This document shows positions 6,541 to 52,444 of a stretch of DNA of 54,972 bases, in pieces (positions within the stretch are counted from its first letter, which is position 1; each line of letters begins with the position of its first letter). This DNA comes from Octopus bimaculoides (taxonomy: Eukaryota). The position numbers were made by a program, and so were the translations under genes. The stretch spans positions 8,118,971 to 8,173,942 of the forward strand of contig NC_069001.1 of the NCBI RefSeq assembly GCF_001194135.2, in the 5' to 3' direction. The notes under the pieces are model-generated. The model was given only the letters and a program-made list of their open reading frames with translations. It did not search any database and was not told the origin of the DNA.

Positions 6541-6689
6541 TTAAATTTCATCTTCATAAACAAATCTTTAAAAAAAGCTACAAAATTGTTCAAGCTTTTT
6601 AGAAGTGTAATTAAGGTCAAAGTAACCAAAAAATAATTAATAAAATCATTAAACATCCTCATTTCTATGCTTACATGGTATTTGTTGAA

Positions 6690-7018: not shown

Positions 7019-7838
7019 TATTAATATTCTGTACATCATTTTACATTTTTTGTTTTGATTTCTTCAGTGAAATAAAGGAAAGAAACTGGAAAAAGAAAAA
7101 GAAGACATTTTTATGCATGGAAATATTCTTTCTCAACAATATTTCCATGGTTCCACTTTTATTTTTTTGAGACTCCATTCCAGTTATTCAAATGAACTTC
7201 TTTAGAAAGCCAGGACAGCAGAAAAGTGACTAGCAATGTAACTGATAAACATAATGCTGTTTATGTAATTTCTTTTTCTTTTGATAAATTGTGATATGTG
7301 AATTTCTATGAGCAAAAGTTAAGAAATAAGTGTACTCTTCATTTTCACAAGTCCAACATCTTAACCACTAAGCAACACACCTCCACCAAAATATATATAA
7401 GGGCTTACATGCACATACATACTACTAAAGTATGACAAAAGAATTTTTGTCATGAATTATGTGTTTATTTCTAACATAATAACTGTACAGAGAAGTTAAT
7501 CCTGATTTATGACAATTCATTTTTCAGTTATTTATTCACATTGTCAAATAAATCAATACAATGCTTTTTTCCCTCTGGAAATATGCTAGATGGAATATAT
7601 ATGAGTCTTCTAAAATGACTGGTAATTTGTCTCACCAATGTAGGTATAGTTGAGGACATGTGTGTATAATGAAGTGTTGGGTGGTTGTTTTCACACAATC
7701 ATAATTTTTAAAATACATTTATTGTTAGATATATCTTATACAAAAAATCCCTTTTCGCATTGGTACAGTGATTTCTTCAGTATGCATAAATGCATGTGTA
7801 GCTCAGTAACTTTTATGAGAAATGATTTACCACAAATA

Positions 7839-9281
7839 TCAGTTATATGGCTTCTTCCCTGTATGAATAAATTTGTGTCTAGTTAAGCAGTATCTTTGAG
7901 AGAATGATTTGCCACATGTATCACAGTGGTATGGTTTGTCTCCTGTATGATTATGTTTGTGGTTAGTTAAGGTAATTACATGAGAGAATGATTTACCACA
8001 GATATCACAATGATATGGCTTCTCTCCAGTATGAACACGTTTGTGTTTAGTTAAATGATCATTTCGATAGAACGATTTACCACAGATATCACAACCATAT
8101 CGTTTCTCTCCTGTATGAATATATCTGTGGTTAGTTAATATAGATTTTAAAGAGAATGATTTACCACAGATATCACAGTCATGTGGTTTTTCTCCTGTAT
8201 GTATTAGTTTGTGACTGGCCAAGTAAGACCTTTGAGAGACTGATTTACCACAGATATTGCACTGATATGGTTTTTCTCCTGTATGAATATGTTTGTGACT
8301 AGTTAAGTCAACATTTCGAAAGAATGATTTACCACAGATATCACAGCGATATGGTTTCTCTCCTGTATGAATACGTTTGTGAGAAGTTAAGTAGCTATTT
8401 CGCGAGAATGATTTACTACAGATATCACAGTGATATGGTCTTTCTCCGGTATGAATACGTTTATGTGTAGTCAAGGTGCTTCCATGAGTGAATGATTTAC
8501 CACAGATATCACAGTGATGCTGTTTTTCTCCTGTATGAATAAATTTGTGGGTAGTTAAGTGACCCGATGCAGAGAATGATTTTCCACAGATATCACAGTG
8601 ATACGGCTTCTCTCCAGTATGAATACGCTTATGAGTAATTAACTGACTTTTTTGAGAGCATGATTTACCACAGACATCACAGCAATATGGTTTTTCACCT
8701 GTATGAATGCGCCTGTGAGCAGTTAACTCACTTGTTTGAGAGAAAGATTTACCACAGATATCACAACAATATGGTTTTTCTCCAGTATGAATATGTTTGT
8801 GAGTAGTTAAATATCCATTTCGAGAGAATGATTTACCACAGATATCACAGCGGTAAGGCTTTTCTCCTGTGTGAATGCGTTTGTGTGATGTTAACGTACT
8901 TCCATGAGAGAATGATTTACCACAGATATCACAGTGATGTGGTTTTTCTCCTGTATGTATACGTTTGTGAGTAGTTAAAGTACTACTTTTGCAGAATGAT
9001 TCACCACAGATGTCACAGTGATATGGTTTTTTTCCTGTATGTATATTTTCATGACTAGTTAGGTTACCTCTTAGAGAAAATGAATTACCACAGATATCAC
9101 AATGATATGGTTTTCCTCTTGTATGAATACGTTTGTGAGTAGTAAGCTTACTTTTTTGAGAGAATGATTTTTTACAGATATCACAGTGGTATAATTTTCT
9201 TCCTATCTCATCAGGAAAATTAATCATTTTAGACTGTGTGTTACATTTAAACTGGTTCTTGGACAATTCGTTTTCCATCAT
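7839..9281 (-). CDS. ZNF-2: C2H2 zinc-finger protein, 16 tandem fingers, 480 aa
   Basis: Intact ORF of a 32-aa N-terminal peptide plus 16 x 28 aa with TGEKP-type linkers. Acceptor ttatttcag at 9505-9506. Confidence 0.95.
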
Positions 9282-10756
9282 TTTTCTTCCCTCATCACAA
9301 TATACAGATAGATATTCTTCTTCTTCTTGTTTTCATATTGCCTTTCTAGTAAACATTTCTACATCATATTCCCATCAGTTGTGATCTTTGCTGACATCTG
9401 AAGTTGCTGCTAACTAATTTATAAATGTTTTGTGTATAATAGCTTTCTTCAGTCTTAAATAGATGATATATATATATTACTTTATACCAATGTTGTTTGA
9501 TATTCTGAAATAAAGAAATAGTATAAGATATAGGGGGTACTTATGTAAAAATTCAATAGTGGAAATTTTATTACACTTCTATATTAACAATCTCCCAACA
9601 GAAACATTTATCTGAATGACTGAAATTCACTTTTTAATTTATTAAAATACCATCATATAACCTTGTGTGAAATCTACATATTTGCAGATGACAGCCTTTC
9701 AGAGTGTGTAACATTATATAAGTTAAACTATAAAATAGTGGACAATTAAATTCTTCTCTATCCAGGAACTTCATTCATTGTGTAGCTTTGTCTAGACATC
9801 ATGTGATGGCTATTAATGAGCATCATTGCCACACAAGCAATAACAGTAATTAGCAACAGACATTTGATTGTGTGTATGAATGTATGTATATATAACATGC
9901 TAGTAATAGCAATTACATTACCCATCATTACAAACTGGGGGCGGGGCTAACCCATAGAAATATTGAAAAACAAACACTTTAAATAAGACCTGAACCTGAA
10001 AAATAAAAGACGGGATGTCTATGGTTGGAATGCCTTTGGTCATAGGTGTGTTGGATCGGAGCTGACCTGAGCTAAAAAAAACTATAACAATTAGTAACAG
10101 CCTAACTGAGGACTTCTCTGTGCAGTCACTTGATTCGTCAGAAATAATAACCAAATCATTACTCAAACATCTTTAATCAAAGACATTTGCTTGATTAAGG
10201 CTGACGTGAGGCTAATTGCCAACAGATTTTTAACCATCTTTCCAGGTAGAGACCAGTAATCTATTTCTCACAGATCAAGTTAACCACACAGAGGGCTTCT
10301 CTTTAAATGAATCAAGCCCGTCACTCATTATAATAGTTTAGTTCCAGTTCAGCTCTTTTTATTTATTAATTCATGACAAAAATCAATTTCTTTTCCATTA
10401 GCATACAAAACTACATCAGTACACCAAATTTGAAAACAACTGGAACAAAATTAAGAAACAGAAAACTGTCACAACAACAGAAAAGATCCCAGCTCTATTC
10501 CAGTAGACCAGTGACTGAAAGCATTCCAGGCTTGACCATCCCATCTATTATTTTTTTAGAGAATCATAGTATGTTGACATGTATCAGTTTCTAGTTAACA
10601 AGGAAATTTATATAACGACGAACAATGTAGCTGTTATTTCTAGCATGTTGGGTCACAACAGTTGACGTACAGAAGTCTTTCGCTCGTTGTTGCTCTCATC
10701 TACAGCCTTATGACGAAAGGCATTCATTCACGGTCACTTTTATTTTTCGGGTAAAG

Positions 10757-19889: not shown

Positions 19890-21090
19890 AACATTAGCTT
19901 TGTTTTCTGTGGTAAATCTAATTTTTGCTTCCCTCCTTGCTAAATATACTAGGTATCTAACTTCTCTTTCAGTTGTTTGATATTATTCCTTGCTCCTCTC
20001 TTTCTTCCATTCTTTCCCAAGCCTGTCTTCACTTACTATAGCTTTGTCTATTATACAACGCCAACGCTATATCAGCTTCTGCTTGACCATCTATAGATTT
20101 GAGATTTGGTCAACGGCACACATCAGGATGTCATGTAAAAATTCCCAGCAGGTCTTTTTCTCCTTCTCATACACATTACTTATACTTCTCTGAATCGAGA
20201 TCTAGTTCTTACTCTAAATAAATCACTAGAATATGTTGAGTGATGTTCTTCATTGTAGAAGGTTTTAGTATCCACAAACATCCATCTAATTTTATGGTAA
20301 GGTGATCGGGGAATTGGCCAGTTTCCTCAAGTTAGTATTGCAAAACTTTAAGTCAACTGAACCATAGAACCCCAAGAAACTTAATCACTCTTGATTATAT
20401 TTCTATAGTCATAACCTCCTTGGTCATTGGGAGAGCCATCATGGTGTTGCTAAACATTTCCATTAAAGTTGCAAAGCATGATTATGTGGTTATTGTCATC
20501 TATTATTGTGCTGTCTATAAGAAAGCCTTCTAGGAAGGTTTTTTTCCTCTTGTTCATCTATCAGTTCTGACTGTGGTGCATATGTGAAAATTACTATTGC
20601 TTATGACTGGTCTAAACCCAATAACTCTGAATGCATCAATTACTTTATCTACCTGTCTCTCTCTACCAACAATATATCTATGCTACAGTGATGTTACCCA
20701 GCCAGAATAATATGCATCTGTGTTTCTTCCTAACAAGAAGATTGACTGAAATTCATCTCCACTTTACCTCTTGTGTCTAGCATACATCAACTCACCACAG
20801 CACAAGAATCTCTACAATATTTCCAGACTGACTCTTAATTGTGCCAAAACTGATGATGTCAACCCCTAAAAATTTGCTTCTGAAAAGAAGAAGGGAGATT
20901 CTGAGGGTGCTTGAGTTGTTTCATGTCTATTTTCTATCTCTGAAAGGAAGAGAGATGGTGCAACCTTTTGATAAGAGTTGAGGAAATTTCACACATTGCC
21001 AGATGTTCACACCAAGCCACCATCCACTTTGCATTTATACACAACCAACTAAAACATAAAGAATCATGCTTCAAAAAAAAAATTATATAA
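19890..21090 (-). mobile_element. Degenerate RTE-type LINE 5' part (AP endonuclease region)
   Basis: Broken-frame motifs GTIKSQSGNIVEIL, VDVC*TQEVKWR, a YAPQS-like block, a GDFNGHV-like block and a CNTNFRK-like block occur in RTE order. Confidence 0.75.
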
Positions 21091-21650
21091 AACTTAGCAA
21101 TAGCAGAGAATGATCTATCACAAATATTACATTGATATGGTTTCTCACCAGTATGAATGCGTTTGTGTTCGGTTACATCACCACTTTGAGAGAATGATTT
21201 GCCACAGATATCACAGGGATATGGTTTCTCTCCTGTATGAATTCGTATGTGTCTAGTTAAGTCGCTTGTTTTAGCAAATGATTTACTACAAATATTACAA
21301 AGATAAGGCTTTTCTCCAGTATGAATGCGTTTATGTATAGTCAATTGGCTACTTACAGACAAGGATTTACCACAGATATCACAGTGATATGGCTTCTCTC
21401 CTGTATGAATACGTTTGTGTTTGGTTAAGTCGCTATTTCCAGAGAATGATTTACCACAAAAATCACAGTGATATCGTTTTTCACCTGTATGAATACGTTT
21501 GTGAGAAGTGAGGTTACCTTTTTGAGAGAATGACTTTTTACAGATTATACAGTGGTATAATGTTTTTCCTATACCTTTCAGTCTCTCATCAGAAAAATCA
21601 ATCTTTTTAGACTCTACTTTAACCTCATTCTCATCTAAATCATTTTCCAT
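20934..21650 (-). CDS. ZNF-4: truncated C2H2 protein, 5 complete fingers plus a LINE-derived tail
   Basis: The paralog-equivalent ATG (MENDL) is at 21650; the track start at 21716 is a TTG. Finger 6 breaks at ~21092 and the frame runs ~50 codons into non-ZF sequence. Acceptor at 22011-22012. Confidence 0.8.
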
Positions 21651-22774
21651 AATTTTTCTTTTCTCACCATAATATTTGACTACACTCGTTTCTGTTTTGT
21701 CTTTTATTCTTAACAAATATTTCTGTTGCTATATATTCCCATGTACTGTTATAAATTTGATGAATTATCATAAATTATAAGTTAAATGGAGAATACTAAA
21801 TCCTTTTGTACACATTCCAGACAATGAAATAGTGAAATTTTGCTATTAATTTCAGTTCATATGAAATATTTCACGGTAATTCTATGAGATTTATATAAAC
21901 AGGGTTATATCTGTTCTGTATAATATTTTCCTTTCGTTTCTGGAAGACATAAATATTATTGATGACGCACGTGATGTTGAAACTCTTTCATGCCAATGTC
22001 ATGGGATATTCTGAAACATGAGAGAAACAACACAAGATGTAGGCAATACTTGAAAAGAAGAGATTCAATAGAGGAAATTCTACAATTTTATAATGAGAAA
22101 ATATAGATGTAACCTTCAACTGAACAATCGAATTTCAGTTTTTAATCATTAAATTACATTATACAACCTTTAGTGGAGCTCATAATTTGCAGATTACAAA
22201 TAATCGTTGAAATTGTTTGAAATTCTGTTAAAAGACACAACAGTGGATACTAAATTTCTTCTCTTTTCAAAAACGTCATTTGTCACTGCTCTGATGCTGT
22301 TCTTGTACTTTAGCCCAATCTTGACTGAGTGGAACTACAACCAACGTCATTCTAGCCAAGACCATTTCTTCCATCTGTCAGACAGTGTATATCTATGAAT
22401 ATATTATTCTATATATATCTCCCTTTTCAAAACGGCAAAGCATAGATTAAAGGGAATATGGCAGCTATTTCTAGCAGATAAACAACTACATAGGTGGTTT
22501 GCTAGTGATTAGTTCTATGACAGCCCCGACTGAGCAAACCTATGATCAAAAGCTGGTTGTTTTTCAAAGGTACTACGAATATTATGACATCAAACAAAAA
22601 GAAACGTTGATGAATAAAGAAAAGACAAGTGAATGAAAAAGCATTAACAAAAAAAGTCTACAAATGGCAGTTGAATTGATAGAAAAATGCCTTCATCTTA
22701 TATAACCTTACAATTTCTTTACATGTAATCATTGTAGGCAGAAGTAATGCTAAAGGTATACCTGTCTGGTAAGA

Positions 22775-23510: not shown

Positions 23511-24191
23511 TATTTGCTTCATATTGGAGCATTACAATCACTCCGCGCGTGCGGTCGTATGTGTGAGAGAGAGAGAGAGAGTGTGTGTGTGTATGCACTC
23601 CTTGTTTCCCAACAAGGAAACATTCCTCATAGTTGAACTTTTTTTTCACGAGACTAAAGAGAAAAAAATGATAGTGACACTTATTTAGAACTATCACATA
23701 GTGTTAAGTCAAGAGGATACAACTATCTCCATGTGCCTATACACACATACGTATGTATGAATGTATGTACGTACGTAGGTGTGAGTGTGTGCTGTGCATA
23801 TATATACATATATATATATATANNNNNNNNNNNNNNNNNNNNNNNNNNNNNNNNNNNNNNNNNNNNNNNNNNNNNNNNNNNNNNNNNNNNNNNNNNNNNN
23901 NNNNNNNNNNNNNNNNNNNNNNNNNNNNNNNNNNNNNNNNNNNNNNNNNNNNNNNNNNNNNNNNNNNNNNNNNNNNNNNNNNNNNNNNNNNNNNNNNNNN
24001 NNNNNNNNNNNNNNNNNNNNNNNNNNNNNNNNNNNNNNNNNNNNNNNNNNNNNNNNNNNNNNNNNNNNNNNNNNNNNNNNNNNNNNNNNNNNNNNNNNNN
24101 NNNNNNNNNNNNNNNNNNNNNNNNNNNNNNNNNNNNNNNNNNNNNNNNNNNNNNNNNNNNNNNNNNNNNNNNNNNNNNNNNNNNNNNNNNN

Positions 24192-24282
24192 AACAACCAT
24201 TTTTCGCTGCTTCCCTTGTTGAAGACCCTTTGCAGAATTCATAAAGCATGCAGTGTTTGATCTGGGTCTGATCCAAACTCAT
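24192..24282 (-). mobile_element. mariner transposase N-terminal fragment beside a gap
   Basis: MSLDQTQIKHCMLYEFCKGSSTREAAKN resembles mariner paired-domain starts (IRhcmlYEF.KG....EA.KN). Confidence 0.65.
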
Positions 24283-25935: not shown

Positions 25936-26834
25936 GAAGAGGGTAGTAAACTAATTACAATCCACAATCCTTTCTCATATAGGAAGAAGGGCTGGAATTG
26001 GTTGACAGGGTTTGTCAATTACTCAATTACATTGGCCCTGGTATTTTGACTGGCACTTTGTTTTATTGACTCCGAAAGTATGAAAGGCAATGAATTTGAA
26101 CCCAGAATGTAAAGCTGACAATTCTATTAGTTTATCACCTTAACCNNNNNNNNNNNNNNNNNNNNNNNNNNNNNNNNNNNNNNNNNNNNNNNNNNNNNNN
26201 NNNNNNNNNNNNNNNNNNNNNNNNNNNNNNNNNNNNNNNNNNNNNNNNNNNNNNNNNNNNNNNNNNNNNNNNNNNNNNNNNNNNNNNNNNNNNNNNNNNN
26301 NNNNNNNNNNNNNNNNNNNNNNNNNNNNNNNNNNNNNNNNNNNNNNNNNNNNNNNNNNNNNNNNNNNNNNNNNNNNNNNNNNNNNNNNNNNNNNNNNNNN
26401 NNNNNNNNNNNNNNNNNNNNNNNNNNNNNNNNNNNNNNNNNNNNNNNNNNNNNNNNNNNNNNNNNNNNNNNNNNNNNNNNNNNNNNNNNNNNNNNNNNNN
26501 NNNNNNNNNNNNNNNNNNNNNNNNNNNNNNNNNNNNNNNNNNNNNNNNNNNNNNNNNNNNNNNNNNNNNNNNNNNNNNNNNNNNNNNNNNNNNNNNNNNN
26601 NNNNNNNNNNNNNNNNNNNNNNNNNNNNNNNNNNNNNNNNNNNNNNNNNNNNNNNNNNNNNNNNNNNNNNNNNNNNNNNNNNNNNNNNNNNNNNNNNNNN
26701 NNNNNNNNNNNNNNNNNNNNNNNNNNNNNNNNNNNNNNNNNNNNNNNNNNNNNNNNNNNNNNNNNNNNNNNNNNNNNNNNNNNNNNNNNTAATATTTAAG
26801 AATTTTTTTTTTCTGTAGTATATGTACATGTGCA

Positions 26835-27169
26835 TGGAGGCGCAATGGCCCAGACCGGGCGTTGTGAGTGTTTATTGAGCAAAAACACCTAAAGCTTCAC
26901 GAGGCTCCGGCAGGGGATGGTGGCGAACCCTGTTGTACTCTTTCGCCACAACTTTCTCTCACTCTTACTTCCTGTTTCTGTTGTGCCTGTAATTCAAAGG
27001 GTCAGCCTTGTCACACTGTGTCACGCTGAATCTCCTCGAGAACTACGTTAAGGGTACACGTGTCTGTGGAGTGCTCAGCCACTTGCACGTTAATTTCACG
27101 AGCAGGCTGTTCCATTGATCGGATCAACTGGAACTCACGACGTCGTAAGCGACGGAGTGCCAACAACAA
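26835..27169 (+). mobile_element. SINE family B with head deletion
   Basis: TSD gtacatgtgca at 26824-26834 and 27170-27180. The deletion between two cccag microhomologies removes the B box. Confidence 0.9.
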
Positions 27170-29604: not shown

Positions 29605-30248
29605 ATGTACTATAACGCAGAATGGAGATTTAACTATTTATTATGATGATGATGCTGACAACAATGATTACAACATATTATATCACTCATTTAGAATTTA
29701 TATTAAGTTTAAGGTTTCAAAGATGCTTGTAAATTAACATTCAGCTTAATCGCCAAGTCATAAATTATTTTATAAATGAAAAATATATATAAAATCTGAC
29801 AGTATCATCCATTTCATAGAATTTCAAACAGAATATGCATAAGATACATGGAAGAACATATATCAGACCGAGTGTGTGTGTGTGTCCCCTAGTTATTGTA
29901 TGTCGGAACTCCTGTCTTTAAATGGTTTGTGTATTTGCTCCTCACATAATAACTGTACAATGATGTAATTCATAATTTATGATAATAATATGTAAATATA
30001 TTTTTGAGCATTTATACAAAATGTCAAATACGTCATAGAATGTGTAATGGAAAATGTATGAGTATTCAGAAAGCATCCAAAGTTTCCTCACCACTGCAGA
30101 GAGAGTCGTTGTCATACAAAATATAATGTTGAGAAGTTTTTATCACATCATTATATAATTTTGTTATGTAAATTTAATTATGGTTATACAAGATAGGAAT
30201 GAATAAATATCTAGTTCAGAGACTTTTTGAGAGAATGAATCACAGCTG

Positions 30249-31364
30249 TCAATTATACGGTTTTTCTCCTAAAGAAATGCACTTGTGCCTACTTAAACTA
30301 CCTGTCTGAGAGAATGATTTACCACAGATATTGCAGTGATATGGTTTCTCTCCTGTATGAATGCGTTTATGAGTAGTTAACTGACCTGTTACAGAGAATG
30401 ATTTACCACAGATATCACAATGATAAGGCTTCTCTCCTGTGTGAATGAAATTATGAGTAGTTAGGTGACTTTTTTGAGAAAAAGATCTGTCACAGATATC
30501 ACAGTGATATGGTTTTTCTCTTGAATGGATACGTCTGTGTTTTGTCAAGTTACCACTTATAGAGAAAGACTTACTACAAATATCACAATGATAAGGCTTT
30601 TCTCCTGTATGAATGCGTTTATGTATAGTTAAATCACTTGCTTTAGCAAATGATTTACCACAAATATCACAGTGATATGGCTTCTCCCCTGTATGAATGC
30701 GTCTGTGTGTAGTTAAGTCACCACATCCAGAGAATGATTTACCACAGATATCACAGTGATATGGCTTCTCTCCTGTATGACTGCGTCTGTGTACAGTTAA
30801 GTCACTTGTTTTAGAGAATGATATGCCACATATATCACAATGATAGGGCTTCTCTCCTGTATGAATACGCTTATGAAATGTTAAGTTACCTGTTGCTGAG
30901 AACGATTTACCACAAATGTCACAGTGATATGGCTTTTCTCCTGTATGAATACGGTTGTGAGTAGTTAAGTGACTTCTTGTAGAGAATGATCTACCACAGA
31001 CATCACAGTGATATGGTTTCTCCCCTGTATGAATATGTCTGTGTTTAGTTAAGCTTGATCCTTGAGAGAATGATATACCACAAATATCACATCGATGTGG
31101 TTTCTCCCCTGTGTGAATGTATTTGTGAGTAGTTAAATGACCTTTTCGTGAGAAAGACTCACCACAGATATCACAGTGAAAAGGTTTTTCTCCTGTATGA
31201 ATGCGTTTATGAATAATCAAGTGACTTCTTTGAGAGAATGACTTGTTACAGACATCACATTGGTAAGATGCCTTTGCTTTCTTTCTCAGCATCCCATCAG
31301 GAAAACAAATCATTTTAGGCTGTGTTTTACATTTAACCCGATTCTCATGTAATTCATTTTCCAT
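30249..31364 (-). CDS. ZNF-5: C2H2 zinc-finger protein, 12 fingers (last lacks the second His), 371 aa
   Basis: Intact ORF of 35 aa plus 12 x 28 aa. Acceptor ttatttcag at 31679-31680. Confidence 0.95.
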
Positions 31365-38691: not shown

Positions 38692-39017
38692 CCTGAAGTG
38701 AAAAAGTTTCTAGAAAATCCCTTTTGTTTCAAAATCAGGATATTTTATCACATTTGTTTCATACTTTTTATATTTATAATTCTATTCTCTCCATATAAAT
38801 AGAGTCAATAAACCTTCTGAATCCAAAGAATCTATGATTTTCTTCTTTTCAAATCAAAGGGGTAACGTTGGCATAAAGAAAATATGTTTTGGGGTAATTG
38901 GTTAAAAAAAGTTCTTGTCAAATACTTCTTTGATAAAATGAACTATCACAGACGTTACACTCGTGTGGTTTCTCTTCTTTCACAGAATGATTTATCACAG
39001 ATATCACAGCAATACAG

Positions 39018-44655: not shown

Positions 44656-45399
44656 ACCAGATTAGGACATGTATATGTGTGTAGGTCTGCTACTGTGTAT
44701 GTGAGTCTGTGTGTGTATGTCCTACCATGGCCATATCATCTTTTTAAGATTTAGGGTTACATTATTTAATGCATTCTCTCCTTATTATAACAGTATTTGG
44801 CTGCTATTTCTAGCAGTGACCACAGAGAATCCCTTATATTGGTCTGTAGACAGCAGCTGTTCACATGAAATATATAAAATACAAAAGTGAAGTAGAGTAT
44901 TCTAAACTGATATCAAAGTCAATCTGGTTTATATACTAGCACCAAAAGAAAAATAACATCATCACCACAAAATATTAGTGCTCAATAAATGTATATATGT
45001 ATGAGAATGTATGCATGTGCATCCATCTGTGTACCCATATATCTGTATTAATTTAATGGTATTCCACTTTGAATTCTACAACTTAGGGTTGTGTCAGAAA
45101 GATGGTTAACATATAGAATAAAATAGTTTAAGAGTAAATTAGTTTTAATGTAAAACTCATACAAGCATGTGGAATGAATATCAAAACATTGATAGTGGTG
45201 ATGATGATGATTGTCAAATTACAGCAACTATTTTCATTATTTTTCAAGATTACACTAACACATGCAAATTAACATTAGACTTCATAATCAAGTCATGAAA
45301 TAAAATAGACCAATAAAACTACATAGTAATATATTTTATAAATATGGAATTATTCCTTTATTGGACTTATTTGTGTTTCTTTAATTTGTCTCTCATATC

Positions 45400-45667
45400 A
45401 CAGCAATATGGTTTCATCCCTGTATGAATTCATCTCTTAAATTAGAATAACGATTCACCACAGATAATTCATGACATAATTTCTCACCTGCAAACATATG
45501 CCTGTACTGTTGCATAAAGACATTTACAGAATGTTTTTCTATATTGAAATGGTTCATTTCCTGTATCAAGGTGTTCATGAGTAATTAAGTTACTTCTTAA
45601 AGAGATTTAAATGCATATGAACTTTTTCTTGAATGAACGCAGATATGTACAGTTAAGTCACTTGATT
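45400..45667 (-). pseudogene. Tail of decayed fingers downstream of ZNF-7 (paralogous tail at ~49420-49800)
   Basis: Finger and linker remnants (cattcaagaaaaa, gatacaggaaatgaacc, tgtggtaaatcg, catacagggatgaaaccatattgctgtgat) with indels and stops. Confidence 0.75.
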
Positions 45668-46377
45668 TCAACAATATTTTACTGCAGATCTCATAGTATA
45701 TATCTCTCCTGTATGAATACATTTGTGATTTCGTAAGGGTCCTCTATGAGAGAATGATTTACCACACGCATGACAGTGATATGGCTTCTCTCCTGTATGA
45801 ATGCGTTTGTGAGTAGTTAAATTTCCATTTTGAGAGAATGATTTACCACAAATATCACAGTAATATGGCTTCTCTCTTGTATGGACACGTTTGTGTAGAG
45901 TTAGGGTATTACTTTCAGAGAATGATTTCCCACAGACATCACAATGGTAAGGTGCTTCTCCTGTATGAAGTCGTTTGTGTTTAATTAAGTTAGCATTGCG
46001 AGAGAATGATTTACCACAGATATCACAATGAAATTGTTTTTCTCCTGTATGAATATGTTTATGCACATTTAAGTATGTTTTCTGANNNNNNNNNNNNNNN
46101 NNNNNNNNNNNNNNNNNNNNNNNNNNNNNNNNNNNNNNNNNNNNNNNNNNNNNNNNNNNNNNNNNNNNNNNNNNNNNNNNNNNNNACTATTGGAGAAGCA
46201 TATACCACAGACATCACAGTGATATGGCTTCTCTCCTGTGTGAATGCTTTTGTGTACAGTTAAGTTAAATCTTACAGAGAATGATTTACCACAGATATCA
46301 CAGAAATACAGTTTTCCTCTTCTATGGAAGCATTTCTTCCTAGATAAGTTACTACTGCCTAAAGATGATTTATACAT
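45668..46377 (-). CDS. ZNF-7: C2H2 protein spanning an assembly gap (5 complete fingers and 2 partial fingers visible)
   Basis: ORFs 46069-46377 and 45668-46066 flank a 100-N gap (46086-46185), so the frame change is probably an artefact. Paralog of ZNF-8. Acceptor ttattgcag at 46883-46884. Confidence 0.75.
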
Positions 46378-47699
46378 TTCAATGTGTCTGCGTGACTTTG
46401 AGAGTGATATGATGTTGTGTGTGTTGCTTGCAGTATCTCGTGCGAAAAACCAAACTTTTTATATTATATTTTGTATTTAAACTGCTTACACAGAATTAAT
46501 TTTCCACTATACTTCTCTCTTCCAAATAAAGTTTTCTCCATTAATTTTGTGTTTTATTTCCAACAAATATTTCTCCTACTATATTTCCATCAACAGTTAT
46601 CGGTTAGGCATCTGAAGATGCTGTAAACGCTTTTACAAACGTGTCCAAGTTTCATTACATTCCAAATTCATCTTGTCCATATTCCAGAGAGCAAAGTAGA
46701 AAAGTGCCACAAATAATTTCACTCAGATGAAATATTTCAGAGAAACTTTTACCACAGATTTCTACAAAACGGGTTCTATCTATTCGGTGTAGCAGCTTCT
46801 TTTATTCTTTTTAAAAGATGATAAATATTGATGATGCATGTGAAGTAAAAAGCCTCTTTAATTACCAATGTCATCTGACTTGCTGCAATAAATAAATAAG
46901 AACAATAGCATAAGATATCAAGAATACTTAAAAAGCAGATATTTAACAGTTTCAGTTTTACATTTTTATAAAGATAATCTGTAGATATAAACCTTTACTA
47001 GAACAACTGAACTTTACCTTATAATTTTTTCATTAAAATTACAGAACAGCCACTACACCTTCAGATTATATAACATTATAATAATGAATTACATAAATTC
47101 CTCTCTCCACAGAAAAGTTATTCACTTTGCCTAAAACACAGATAGTGCTGAGCAGATCTATCATCAAAATCATTCCAAGTACGGCCAACACATTATTTTA
47201 TATATCAAGGATTATATTATTCAAAGTGTCCTTTGTTTTTTTTAAGATGATAGGGTATGATCTGAGGGAACTTGAAGTGACTACAATGGGTCCAAACAGA
47301 ATATATCTCTCTACAAATTTCTCAAGTCATACAGATTTTAACTAATTTTCTCATTACAAAAGAAAATATCTTTGCAAGATTTCAGTCCAGACTTGGTCAG
47401 ATGGCAATATAGTGAATGTGAAATGAATTACATCTCATTGATGGATTTGATTCTGTAGAAACCATAGTGGTTATCACAAACAAGACTTACTGCAAGAAAT
47501 AAGGGAGCTTCTTATTTACAACAGGTCCCATAACTTTTGAGATTATTCAAGTCATATTTATAGCACAGAAGGGTCAGAGAGGCTGGCAAATAAGATATTA
47601 TTGGCATGGGAAATATTGAAGTTCTTTCAGTTGAGATTAGATTACAGTGAAGTGGGAAAGTCTGATGGGTTCTCTCCTAATATTCTTCTAATTATATCC

Positions 47700-47835
47700 C
47701 TAGCTTAGCGATTAGAGTAATCGGTTCACGATTGCAAGGTCGTGAATTCAATTCTCAATGGTGTGTTGTTTCCTTGAGCAAGACACTTTATTTCACTTTG
47801 TTCCACTCCAACCCAGCTAGCAAAAATGAGTTGTA
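47700..47835 (+). mobile_element. Diverged tRNA/CORE-like SINE fragment
   Basis: gtcgtgaattcaattc (B-box-like) followed by ccttgagcaagacactttatttcac. Confidence 0.55.
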
Positions 47836-49800
47836 TCTAATTCAACATAAATAACGTATTTTTCTGCAATATATGGATAATTTATCCTGATCACGCTATT
47901 TTCCATTCTCTTCTGTTTCTATTGGAAAATCGGTGAAGGTGAAGCACATGTACACCACCCATTTCCAGTGTTTTTGGTTTTTTGGGGGGGATTTTTTTTT
48001 TTCAGAATTTCTTCGGATTTCTAAGTTTTCGATATACAGGAGAATATGAATTCCTAATTTTTAACTTTTTTTCGATTTTTTTTTATCCATGTACAAAAAT
48101 ACAAAGATTATGAATCTGGGATTTTTTTTTTTTTATTTTAATTTTTCTTAAAGATACATTCAATTTCCAGATTCGTAATCTCTACGAGAATAAAAAAAAA
48201 ATTACAAAATAAGAGACTGGGGTGGAGGAAAACGTGATTTTCGGGCAAAATTGTACCCTCCCATATCGAAAACATACCAATCCCCGGAAAATTTTGAAAT
48301 TTTTTTAATGTGGTGGGGGCGTGATTTAAGGTGTATTTAGCTGCTATTTTTAGCACAACTCACGACCAGCGTACAAGCAACTGTTTTCACCATTCTTGAA
48401 ATCCCAGAAATAAGACGAATAGGTTGATAGTTTGATGACTCAGTTTTTCTGCTTTTTTGGAATGGTATATACAGTGTTGTGTATGTACAGATCAAGATAG
48501 ATATCTGTAGAAAGAGATCTACTGAACAGATTGATGAGGATAGGAGCTAGTACTTGCATGCTTAGTTAGAGGATAAGGGAAGATACATTGCCAGAACTGT
48601 TAGCTTCTGAGAAAGGATGGTGTTTTCACACTTGGAAAAGTTTTGTTAAGTGTGAGAATTAAAAGTTAAACAAAAAAAAAAATGTGTAAAATTTCTCCTC
48701 AATTGTACTATTTGTAGATCCATCTTAGTTGAGGAGCTGCGTAAAAGAAATCTTCAAATTTAGTACAGATTCAATTGGCAACAGATCAATAATACCTGCT
48801 AACATTTCAGAAACTACCAACAGTTAGCAAACATTGCAACAGTTCAGCTATGCTAATGTAGAGAATGTAATATCTTCTATAAAATTTATGTGTTGACATA
48901 TTTTGTTTTAGTTATCACAAATGACAAAGTGTGACAAATGTAGGCTTATTTAGTATAATTTATAACATAACACGGATTAAAATAAAAACATTGGCTATCA
49001 CATTCTAACAGTATTAGTATTCAGTATCAAATAATGTCAACAGATTTTATAACTCTGGGTTAAAGATAAATCTGGAGAACTGTGTAATTTATACCATACA
49101 CAGATCAAGTCAAGGAATTCTACAACTTAGGGTTGTGTCAGAAAGATGGTTAACATATAGAGTAAATTAGTTTTAATTTAAAACCCATACAAGCATGTGG
49201 AATGGATATTAAAACAGTGATAGTGGTAATGATAATGATGATTGTCAAATTACAGCAACTATTTTCATTATTTTTCAAGATTACACTAACACATGCAAAT
49301 TAACATTAGACTTCATAATCAAGTCATGAAATAAAATAGACCAGTAAAACTACATAGTAATATATTTTATAAATATGGAATTATCCCTTTATTGGACTTA
49401 TTTGTGTTTCTTTAATTTGTCTCTCATATCACAGCAATATGGTTTCATCCCTGTATGAATTCATCTCTTGAATTAGAATAACGATTTACCACAGATAATT
49501 CATGACATAATTTCTCACCTGCAAACATATGCCTGTACTGTTGCATAAAGACATTTACAGAATGTTTTACTATATTGAAATGGTTCATTTCCTGTATCAA
49601 GGTGTTCATGAGTAATTAAGTTACTTCTTAAAGAGATTTAGAATGCATATGAACTTTTTCTTGAATGAACGCAGATATGTACAGTTAAGTCACTTGATTT
49701 CAATAATATTTTACTGCAGATCTCACAGTATATATATTTCTTATATGAATACATTTGTGATAATCTAACAGTCCCCTTCGAGAGGGTGATTTACCAGTTA

Positions 49801-51225
49801 TCACGGTGATAATGGTTCTATTTCTGTATGAGTGCGTTTGTGAATATTTAAGCAATGATTCTGAGAGAATGATTTACCACAGATATGACAGCAATATGGC
49901 TTTTCTCCTGTATGAACACGTTTATGCACAGTTAAGTTTCCATTTTGAGAGAATGATTTACCACAAACATCACAGCGATATGGTTTCTCTCTTGTATGGA
50001 CACGTTTGTGTACAGTTAAATTGTTACTTTCAGTGAATGATTTACCACAGACATCACAATGATAAGGTGTTTCTCCTGTATGTAGGCGTTTGTGGTTAAT
50101 TAAGATACCATTGTAAGAGAATGATTTACCACAGATGTCACAGCTATAGGGTCTCTCTCCTGTATGCAGACGTTTATGTATAGCTAAGGTACCACTTTCA
50201 GCGAATGATCTACCACAAATATCACAATGATATGGCTTTTCCCCTGAATGAATGCGTTTGTGAACAGTTACTTTAGCTTTCCGAAGGAACGATTTACCAC
50301 AGATATTACAGTGGTATGGTTTTTCTCCTGTATGAACACGTTTATGCACATTTAAGTATCTTTTCTGAGCAAATGATTTACCACAAACATCACAGTAATA
50401 TGGCTCCATTCTAATATGTATGTCTTTGTGTTTTGTTAAGTTAGAATTTACTGAGAACGATTTACCACAGATATCACAATGATATGGTTTCTCTCCTGTA
50501 TGAGTATATTTGTGAATAGTTAAGTAACTATTCTGAGAGAATGATTTACCACACACATTACAATGATATGGTTTCTCTCCTGTATGAGTGCGTTTGTGAA
50601 CAGGTAAATAACCATTTACAGAGAATGATTTACCACAGATATCACAATGATATGGTTTCTCTCCTGTATGAGTGCGTTTATGAGAAGTTAAGTAACTACT
50701 TCGAGCGAATGATGTACCACAGATATCACAATGATATGGTTTCTCTCCTGAATGAGTGCGTTTGTGAATAGTTAAATAGCCAGTTAGAGAAAAGGATTTA
50801 CCACAGATATCACAAGGATATGGTTTCTCTCCTGTATGAGTGTATTTGTGAGTAGTTAAAGAAACTTTTTGAGAGAATGACTGACCACAGATATCACAAT
50901 GATATGGTTTCTCTCCTGTATGAGTGCGTTTGTGAGTAATTAAGTTACTGCTTACAGAGAATGATTTACCACAGACATCACAGTGATAGGGCATCTCTCC
51001 TGTATGGAGATGTTTGTGTCTAATTAAGTTACTATTTCTGGAGAAGGATATGCCACATATATCGCAATGATATGGCTTTCCTCCTGTGTGAATGCGTTTG
51101 TGTTCAGTTAAGGTGACACCTACAGAGAATGATTTACCACAGATATTGCAGAGACAAGGTTTTTCTCTTCTATGAAAGCGTTTCTTCCTAGGCAAGTTAC
51201 TACTGCCTAAAAATGATTTATACAT
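49801..51225 (-). CDS. ZNF-8: C2H2 zinc-finger protein, 16 fingers, 474 aa, starting at an internal ATG
   Basis: Intact ORF of 25 aa plus 16 fingers. Acceptor ttatttcag at 51941-51942. Confidence 0.9.
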
Positions 51226-51565
51226 TTCTCTTGTATGAATGCGTTTGTGTGCATTTAATGCAATTGCTCAAGAGAATGATTTACCACAGATGTCGAAATG
51301 CTATGACCTTTCTGCTCTATGAATATGTTTGTGTTTAGTTAAGTTACTGCTTCGAAGAAACAACTTACCACAAATATTTGACTGAAATGGTGTTTTTCTC
51401 CTGTATGAATAAATTTGCAAGTAGTTAGGCTACTCTTTGAAGAAAATAGCCTTCAAGGTTAATATGAGGTTGTATGTGTTTCTTACAGTATCTCATGCAA
51501 AAAGCCAAGCTTTTTATATTATATTTTGTCTTTAAACTGTTTACACAGAATTAATTTTCCACTAT
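51226..51565 (-). pseudogene. Dead ancestral N-terminus and three dead fingers upstream of the ZNF-8 ORF
   Basis: GTG GAA AAT TAA replaces ATG GAA AAT GAA. The fingers carry a frameshift, lost Cys residues, and TAG and TGA codons. Confidence 0.8.
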
Positions 51566-52444
51566 ACTTCTTCTCTCTTCCCAATAAAGTTTTCTTCATT
51601 AATTTTGTATTTCATTTCCAACAGATATTTCTCCTGCTATATTTCCATCAACTGTTAACAGTGAGGCATCTGAGGATGCTGCAAACTCCTTTACAAACTT
51701 GTCCAAGTTTCATTAGACTACAAATTCATCTTCTCCACATTCCAGAGAGCAAAGTAAAAAAGTGTCACAAATAATCTCACTCAGATGAAATATTTCAGAG
51801 AAACTTATACCACAGATTTCTACAAAACGGGTTCTATCTGTTCGGTGTAGCAGCTTCTTTTACTCTTTTTAAAAGATGATAAATATTGATGATGCATGTG
51901 AAGTAAAAAGACTCTTTAATTACCAATGCCATCTGACGTTCTGAAATAAAAAAAAAACAACATATCAAGAATACTTAAAAAGCAGATATTTAACAGTTTC
52001 AATTTTACATATCTATATAGATAATCTATATAGAACTGAACTTTACCATATAATTTTTCCATTAAAATTATATCATACAACGTCTATAAAGTTTTAGACA
52101 ACAGCCACTACACCTTCAGGTTGTATAACATTATAGTAATAAATTACAGAATAATGAACAATAAAATTCCTCTCTCCACAGAAATGTTATTTCACACTGC
52201 TTTGAATCCCAGACAGGACAGAGCAGATTTATGATTAAAATTATTCCAAATCAGGCCAACAGTGTCCTTTGTTTTTTAAAATGATAGGGTATGATCTGAG
52301 TGAACTTGAAGTTAATATAATGGGTCCAATGGAATAGATCTCTGCATAAATTTCTCAAGACATATAGATTTTAACCAATTTCCCATTACAAAAGGAAATA
52401 TCTTAAGAAGTTTCCACGTTAGAGATGGACTATATGTAATCTGA

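Follow-up and report, generated by a model that had tools for sequence, protein, structure and literature searches.

Zinc-finger (ZNF) genes whose 5′ end is disabled but which retain a residual open reading frame (ORF) are already known. The closest described case is human ZNF252 (8q24.3), in which an ORF of 461 residues begins inside the finger exon and 11 fingers lie past its stop, complete and degenerate units standing in a row in the 3′ untranslated region; the gene carries a non-coding RefSeq accession (NR_023392), and the chimpanzee ortholog has decayed further (PMC2865497). In vertebrate KRAB-ZNF clusters, degenerate end fingers, fingers past the stop, and gain or loss of whole units are standard (PMC2865497, PMC5363842). 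C2H2 expansions have also been described in octopus and other coleoids, in an account that does not discuss pseudogenes or start-codon turnover (PMC12513265). Here we analyze a 54,972-nt stretch of the Octopus bimaculoides genome (the window; assembly GCF_001194135.2, contig NC_069001.1, positions 8,118,971 to 8,173,942, forward strand) that contains two neighboring C2H2 genes, ZNF-7 and ZNF-8. Both have lost the ancestral start codon of their family, and in both an ATG created by a deletion within a decayed finger now stands in frame with the fingers that follow. What is particular to this locus is the clear order of events, the deletion-born start, and the presence of two diverged copies with intact fingers.

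ZNF-8 resembles ZNF252 in its broken N-terminal module (a stop and a change of frame), in its long ORF starting from inside the finger exon, in the fingers found past its stop, and in its position within a tandem ZNF cluster (PMC2865497). ZNF252 lost a KRAB effector domain, whereas the octopus copies lost a short peptide without a known domain. The orthologs of ZNF252 decay on, whereas ZNF-7 and ZNF-8 both keep intact fingers, with a ratio of nonsynonymous to synonymous divergence (dN/dS) of about 0.4 between them, and their start codon, unlike that of ZNF252, comes from a deletion junction within a finger. As in vertebrate KRAB-ZNF arrays, whole units have been deleted or duplicated and dead fingers lie past premature stops. 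The density of mutations in ZNF-8 is higher outside the retained ORF, a pattern that in KRAB-ZNF genes has been taken as evidence of selection (PMC2865497, PMC5363842). The octopus family differs from KRAB-ZNF genes in being lineage-specific to cephalopods and in having neither KRAB nor SCAN, and its truncation is 5′ with loss of the start, whereas truncation in KRAB-ZNF genes is usually 3′. Like the octopus and coleoid expansions (PMC12513265), which come from the same group of organisms, ZNF-7 and ZNF-8 are tandem, lineage-specific duplicates.

The window (35% G+C, six runs of N) contains C2H2 zinc-finger genes clustered in tandem, each of them on the minus strand, and five are intact (g9281, g15649, g21650, g31364 and g40109). 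Each of the five encodes, immediately before finger 1, an N-terminal peptide of ~30 residues of the M(M)ENE or MANE type, to which no Pfam family was matched. Relatives in Octopus vulgaris, found with a profile of the family N-peptides, have an annotated start of the same M(M)ENE kind. In an alignment of the seven window paralogs, the finger exon, leader and upstream acceptor of ZNF-7 and ZNF-8 are homologous to those of their neighbors; ZNF-8 is, and ZNF-7 probably is, a tandem paralog in an octopus-specific C2H2 poly-zinc-finger family. Unlike the canonical octopus members and the O. vulgaris relatives, neither gene can start with an M(M)ENE-type sequence, and neither has an ATG-initiated N-peptide (M-E-N-E...FPDE...) in frame with its fingers.

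At the site of the ancestral start the paralogs read ATGGAAAAYGAW and g31364 reads ATGGAAAATGAA, with an ATG in 5/5 intact members. The corresponding site reads GTGGAAAATTAA in both ZNF-8 (51562–51551) and ZNF-7 (46507–46496, both minus strand): as the first-pass annotation of this DNA had stated, GTG GAA AAT TAA replaces ATG GAA AAT GAA. The start codon has changed from ATG to GTG, where comparison with the paralogs and the O. vulgaris family gives ATG, and codon 4 has changed from GAA to TAA. A 1-nt deletion in the region that encoded the N-peptide (51465–51550 in ZNF-8, minus strand) is also common to both copies, leaving 98 nt, not a multiple of three, from the GTG to finger 1 and hence a −1 frameshift. 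The ancestral start is dead in both copies. The sharing of these lesions by copies whose non-coding sites show 10.7% divergence is far from chance, and the three lesions therefore predate either the split of ZNF-7 from ZNF-8 or the last homogenization of the 5′ region. Because the start-killing lesions and the junction that forms the new ATG lie in the part of the copies that is 89% identical, they are at least as old as that divergence.

In ZNF-8 the decayed peptide region is followed by three dead fingers, D1 to D3 (51226–51464, minus strand). Against an nhmmer profile made from 59 intact 84-bp finger units of the window they score 23, 37 and 51 bits, compared with 45–81 bits for the intact units of the same gene. 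They are interrupted by stops (TAA at 51461–51459, TAG at 51303–51301 and TGA at 51270–51268), by a +2 shift between D1 and D2 (at about 51391–51378) and by a 9-nt knuckle deletion, and several of their Cys and His ligands are gone. Positions 51226–51562 thus carry lesions of the pseudogene type, comprising the loss of the start, four nonsense codons and two frameshifts. The distance from the GTG to the new ATG is 130 nt in ZNF-7 and 337 nt in ZNF-8, so that the stretch missing from ZNF-7 measures 207 bp and not the ~230 bp first estimated.

The new ATG of ZNF-8 (51225–51223) opens a relic fourth finger (51157–51225, minus strand; 23 bits) from which both Cys and the first His are absent. At the junction, 4 nt stand for 25 nt of the canonical unit, and the net loss of 21 nt removes seven codons and turns KPYHCDICG into MY, in agreement with the earlier reading. 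The A of the ATG corresponds to profile position 79, where the linker Lys codon has its first A, and TGTA follows it. The same ATG (46377), the same deletion junction and the same relic are present in ZNF-7, as had also been claimed. A deletion junction within a decayed finger gave rise to the ATG, whose context is identical in both copies, with G at −3 and T at +4.

Two functional suggestions attached to this N-terminus are unsupported. The core of a classical monopartite nuclear localization signal is K-(K/R)-X-(K/R); the relic (residues 12–22), proposed to act as such a signal, does not strictly match this core in either copy, its basic run being RKKR in one and RKKC in the other. The idea that the shortened proteins are dominant-negative competitors assumes that the ~30-residue peptide, which has no Pfam family, is an effector.

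Behind the new ATG, the ZNF-8 ORF extends for 474 codons plus the stop (1,425 bp; 49801–51225, minus strand), and the closest in-frame stop upstream lies 15 codons before the ATG. As first reported, the ATG is in frame with 16 intact fingers. These 84-bp C2H2 units, F1 to F16 (49813–51156, minus strand; 45–81 bits), all have the form C-X2-C-X12-H-X3-H of a C2H2 poly-zinc-finger protein and keep 64/64 zinc ligands. Scores for Pfam zf-C2H2 and zf-H2C2_2 exceed the cut-offs, the 28-residue (84-bp) phase holds over 16/16 units, and the linkers are mostly TGEKP, with the variants TGGKP, TGEMP, IRMEP and TEIEP. A +1 shift in the F16 linker, the last of the array, yields the stop and so truncates the 3′ end, and at least five dead finger units lie beyond it (49441–49811, minus strand; scores from 31 to about 2 bits). 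Just past the stops of intact paralogs there are likewise one or two degenerate finger relics (7773–7841, 38922–39014 and 30212–30250), so truncation at the 3′ end is general among the arrays of the cluster. The exact 474-residue ORF, together with a neighboring 371-residue ORF, is present on record CM046621.1 of GCA_001194135.2; of five window proteins looked up as exact sequences, both with the stop and without it, none is in the protein collection.

ZNF-7 is a tandem duplicate about 5 kb from ZNF-8. It is interrupted by an assembly gap of nominally 100 N (46086–46185) that hides the middle of the array; about 610 bp of its ORF are visible, 192 nt in a 5′ piece and 418 nt in a 3′ piece. The 5′ piece (46186–46377, minus strand) comprises the new ATG (46377–46375), the relic, finger 1 and the part of finger 2 that runs into the gap. 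The 3′ piece (45668–46085, minus strand), open from the gap edge to its stop, comprises the tail of an F10 equivalent, equivalents of F13 to F15 and a hybrid finger; dead finger units lie past the stop (45410–45696, minus strand). The unit at the gap edge (46034–46085) equals the tail of ZNF-8 F10 (50317–50368) at 48/52 positions and stands directly before the F13 equivalent, and the two arrays therefore differ by two whole units (F11–F12).

Identity between the two genes varies along their length. Across 904 aligned bases of the non-coding leader and intron, identity is 89.3% (10.7% divergence); the same 904 bp contain 12 insertion or deletion events, 10 of them not divisible by three in length. 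Between orthologous finger units identity is about 86%, whereas the dead-finger tail and 3′ flank are 97.3% identical (49115–49745 in ZNF-8, 45071–45715 in ZNF-7). Identity changes abruptly, at the point where an 83-bp deletion in ZNF-7 (after 45747) has merged two units to form the hybrid finger. This mosaic indicates that the 3′ tail recently underwent conversion or unequal exchange. The 3′ contig of ZNF-7 was also considered as an allelic copy of ZNF-8, a possibility rejected because the finger region is only about 86% identical.

The distribution of damage across ZNF-8 is highly uneven. The ~340 bp that precede the ORF contain at least 7 ORF-disabling lesions and the ~370 bp that follow it at least 3, with none in the 1,425-bp ORF itself; for ~10 randomly placed lesions, the chance of an open stretch spanning two-thirds of the array is about 2 × 10⁻⁴. 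A neutral simulation that used the observed per-lineage divergence (0.058) and the observed rate of insertions and deletions gave, for ZNF-8 alone, a probability of 0.04 that no stop would arise, of 1.5 × 10⁻⁴ that the 64 ligands would be kept and of 4 × 10⁻⁴ that no frameshift would occur. The visible units of ZNF-7 are likewise intact. As the 16-finger frame is intact far beyond chance, it is probably still used.

Divergence between the copies points in the same direction. dN/dS between ZNF-7 and ZNF-8 is 0.36 (Fisher p of about 1 × 10⁻⁴), or 0.41 (p = 0.002) with corrected unit orthology. Amino-acid differences fall at 11/28 of helix positions −1 to +6, compared with 12/84 of positions elsewhere (p = 0.007), and at none of the zinc ligands or the Phe/Leu core. 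The array does not show the neutral evolution expected of a pseudogene (dN/dS of about 1, random lesions); the pattern of its fingers is that of working, diversifying ZNF paralogs. The dead fingers, for their part, carry more lesions than divergence since the split predicts. This excess fits a death that preceded the split, in which case the array would have survived without its old start for longer. There are strong signs that the downstream array has been under purifying selection since the putative restart, and selection after the loss of the start is likely. Selection had been argued in the first-pass annotation from the open frame behind a destroyed 5′ end, and the low dN/dS, the absence of lesions from 1,425 bp and the placement of changes in the helices support that argument; neutral evolution of the array, which would have spoken against it, was not seen (dN/dS 0.36–0.41, p ≤ 0.002).

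The leader shared by the family bears on how the new ATG might be reached. An acceptor-like motif, TTATTTCAG immediately followed by AAT, occurs in 7/7 window paralogs, 226–360 nt upstream of the ancestral ATG, and the putative exons that begin after it start at 9504, 16007, 22010, 31678, 40468, 46882 and 51940 on the minus strand. In ZNF-8 the motif (a T-run plus ATTTCAG; 51941–51956, minus strand) places the putative exon start 715 nt ahead of the new ATG, and in ZNF-7 it reads TTATTTATTGCAG (46883–46895, minus strand). In the O. vulgaris family the motif lies 124–263 nt upstream of the ATG (locus L003 at ~25597; locus L004 at ~3885, ~9827 and ~16287), and the last exon of the O. vulgaris gene model P0126 starts exactly at the motif, which this model uses as an acceptor. 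Because the motif is conserved and used in this way, the finger exon of the family probably begins there, with a spliced 5′ untranslated region before the ATG. The putative leaders of ZNF-7 and ZNF-8 measure 505 and 715 nt and contain 9 and 11 upstream ATGs, respectively. The number of upstream ATGs was rejected as an argument against translation, since the intact paralogs have 7–10 of them in shorter leaders.

Several further features of the leader were observed. An upstream ATG with G at +4 is conserved in 7/7 paralogs, 83–97 nt before the ancestral start (9375, 15746, 21742, 31457, 40198, 46590 and 51648, minus strand), and in 5/7 it opens a 3-codon upstream ORF (ATG GRA AYA TAG); it may serve the family in translational control. 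ZNF-7 and ZNF-8 also have in common an upstream ORF of 25/26 codons (MKKTLLGREKKYSGKLILCKQFKDKI / MEKTLFGREKYSGKLILCKQFKYKI; 51599–51519 and 46541–46464, minus strand), which crosses the dead start in another frame and whose ATG is absent from the intact paralogs. Weak finger-like matches, ATCTGTGGTAWAAGTTTCTCTG, in the 5′ leader (51820–51782 and 46762–46724, minus strand; nhmmer 6.9 and 8.6 bits) hint that the family leader may derive from an older decayed finger.

We propose the following history. Before the two copies diverged, the original start would have been lost through the change of ATG to GTG, the TAA at codon 4 and the −1 frameshift, and the first three to four fingers would then have decayed. 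Through a net deletion of 21 nt in the fourth finger, the A from a linker Lys codon would have come to stand next to the TG from a Cys codon, giving an in-frame ATG, after which the remaining 16 fingers would have evolved as a working DNA-binding array that changed chiefly in its recognition helices. Transcription of the locus would presumably run through the conserved upstream exon and acceptor of the family. The product would be a shortened protein that lacks the ~30-residue N-peptide and begins at or near the new ATG. Of this history, the lesions, their presence in both copies, the deletion junction and the signature of selection are seen in the sequence, whereas transcription, use of this ATG and a function for the protein are deduced.

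On the evidence of the frame, the substitutions and the acceptor motif, which is kept in both copies, we lean by a small measure towards ZNF-8, and probably ZNF-7, being still-coding truncated genes that start at or near the new ATG. The more ambitious account is that a deletion-born start codon rescued a "headless" 16-finger array, which was later duplicated to give a small octopus subfamily that lacks the N-peptide and evolves under purifying and helix-diversifying selection; this we offer more tentatively, as an account that may well be wrong. The first-pass annotation called the locus a case of "gene rebirth". The description of a 5′-truncated paralog with a retained ORF stands, but the term itself overstates the sequence evidence.

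A number of observations weigh against a still-coding gene. Most of ZNF-7, and with it the frame between its two visible pieces, is hidden by the gap. The new ATG of ZNF-8 has T at +4, and the 715-nt leader before it contains 11 upstream ATGs, one of them overlapping the new ATG. Synonymous divergence in the array (0.25–0.35) exceeds that of the flanking non-coding sequence (0.116), which is unexplained. Gene conversion is active at the locus (3′ tails 97.3% identical, 89.3% upstream), and functional paralogs in other parts of the genome could, through conversion, create the appearance of selection. Database searches lent no support: a protein-database search with the full ZNF-8 ORF was crowded out by long vertebrate ZNFs, with no relatives from octopus among the hits, one with the unique 74-residue N-terminus gave a single candidate that was not significant, and a metagenome scan for the ATG junction had no matches. 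The O. vulgaris loci reached with the family N-peptide profile (L003 to L005) have nothing but repeats in common with the window and are not orthologs of ZNF-7 and ZNF-8. Finally, ZNF252 provides a precedent for a long residual ORF in a presumed pseudogene (PMC2865497).

The strongest rival takes up several of these points. ZNF-7 and ZNF-8 would be pseudogenes, either silent or transcribed without being translated, whose units have been overwritten time and again from functional paralogs elsewhere by conversion or unequal exchange, and the ATG would simply be the first in a leftover ORF. The ancestral start is indeed destroyed and the array has decayed at both ends. Exchange has left its marks in the contrast between the 3′ tail and the upstream region, in the absence of F11–F12 from ZNF-7 and in the hybrid finger formed by the 83-bp deletion, and synonymous divergence above that of the flanks is what imported differences would produce. 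The octopus genome reportedly holds about 1,800 C2H2 genes. Decay is also seen elsewhere in the cluster: in the array at 1519–2739, which looks damaged, a +1 shift falls between the unit that starts at 2232 and the one at 2147, leaving two overlapping ORFs, and the array of g21650 (20934–21716) stops after five fingers at about 21093, beyond which the sequence is unrelated. Against this, the window contains no donor. Long alignments of the ZNF-8 array to other window arrays reach at most about 77% identity (best about 75–77%), each ZNF-7 unit has its nearest match in its positional ortholog rather than in another paralog, and no pair of units within ZNF-8 exceeds 89%; these low identities give no sign of recent refreshment by a nearby donor. 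Conversion would moreover need to spare the flanking dead fingers yet perfect 16 units in ZNF-8 and all visible units in ZNF-7, and the joint neutral probabilities are below 1 × 10⁻⁶. We regard this explanation as unlikely, though it is the best of the alternatives.

Markedly less probable is a second rival, in which the array is functional and selected but translation starts elsewhere than at 51225/46377, through a hidden intron that joins an upstream coding exon, at a later Met, or at a non-AUG codon. From the signature of selection it follows only that this is the frame in which the array is read. At least one upstream exon exists in the family, given the conserved acceptor used by the O. 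vulgaris model; AG dinucleotides follow pyrimidine-rich stretches just upstream of the ATG in both copies; and simple scanning to 51225 would be inefficient with many upstream ATGs. Splice entry would have to fall within the open codons before the ATG, 15 in ZNF-8 and 28 in ZNF-7. Because the ZNF-8 frame is closed 15 codons upstream, alternative entry there is confined to a 45-nt window, in which no candidate conserved between the copies was found; given the 207-bp difference, the near-ATG acceptor candidates of ZNF-7 and ZNF-8 are not conserved in position. The intact paralogs tolerate 7–10 upstream ATGs in the same leader, and the two copies do not differ in the ATG or its flanks. The public gene call at the ZNF-8 locus is a single-exon 474-residue ORF, although this call may be ORF-based and is weak evidence. 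Recent homogenization within the array as the cause of ORF integrity was rejected, as the maximum identity between units (89%) is the same as in an intact paralog.

The surroundings of the two genes add several observations. A divergently oriented ZNF gene lies ~10 kb upstream of ZNF-8, past the 3′ end of the window (locus L001, 1–565 and 4019–6253), and is separated from the cluster by an N-run of at least 2.2 kb; since this neighbor is divergent and beyond the N-run, the minus-strand cluster starts with ZNF-8. Between ZNF-8 and ZNF-7, the spacer contains a stretch (47690–47830; GGTTCACGATTGCAAGGTCGTGAATTCAATTC…CCTTGAGCAAGACACTTTATTTCAC) that resembles a transfer RNA or a short interspersed element, on which ARAGORN made no call; its 25-nt tail motif (47772–47796) occurs once in the window, and ARAGORN and Rfam gave no matches in the region. 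The long "ORFs" at 23709–24282 and 26135–26845, on both strands, cross the N-runs at 23823–24191 and 26146–26789 and are gap artefacts. Other octopus gene calls that start within relic fingers occur at 6635 and 16258 of locus L005.

Whether or not ZNF-8 and ZNF-7 are translated, the locus is an incremental addition to what is known of ZNF cluster dynamics, not a new mechanism. Its value lies in the internal controls that adjoin the array, dead fingers to either side and a sister copy that has diverged, which make the order of events readable from loss of the start through decay and the new ATG to duplication. If the proposed history is true, the locus is a datable example of the birth of a start codon through deletion in a repeat array. 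If the genes are not translated, it would show how gene conversion lets dead ZNF arrays pass for live ones. If they are translated, cephalopod ZNF models that start in relic fingers need not be artefacts or pseudogenes, and ZNF-8 and ZNF-7 would provide a clean natural case of fast-evolving ZNF clusters recycling their damaged copies.

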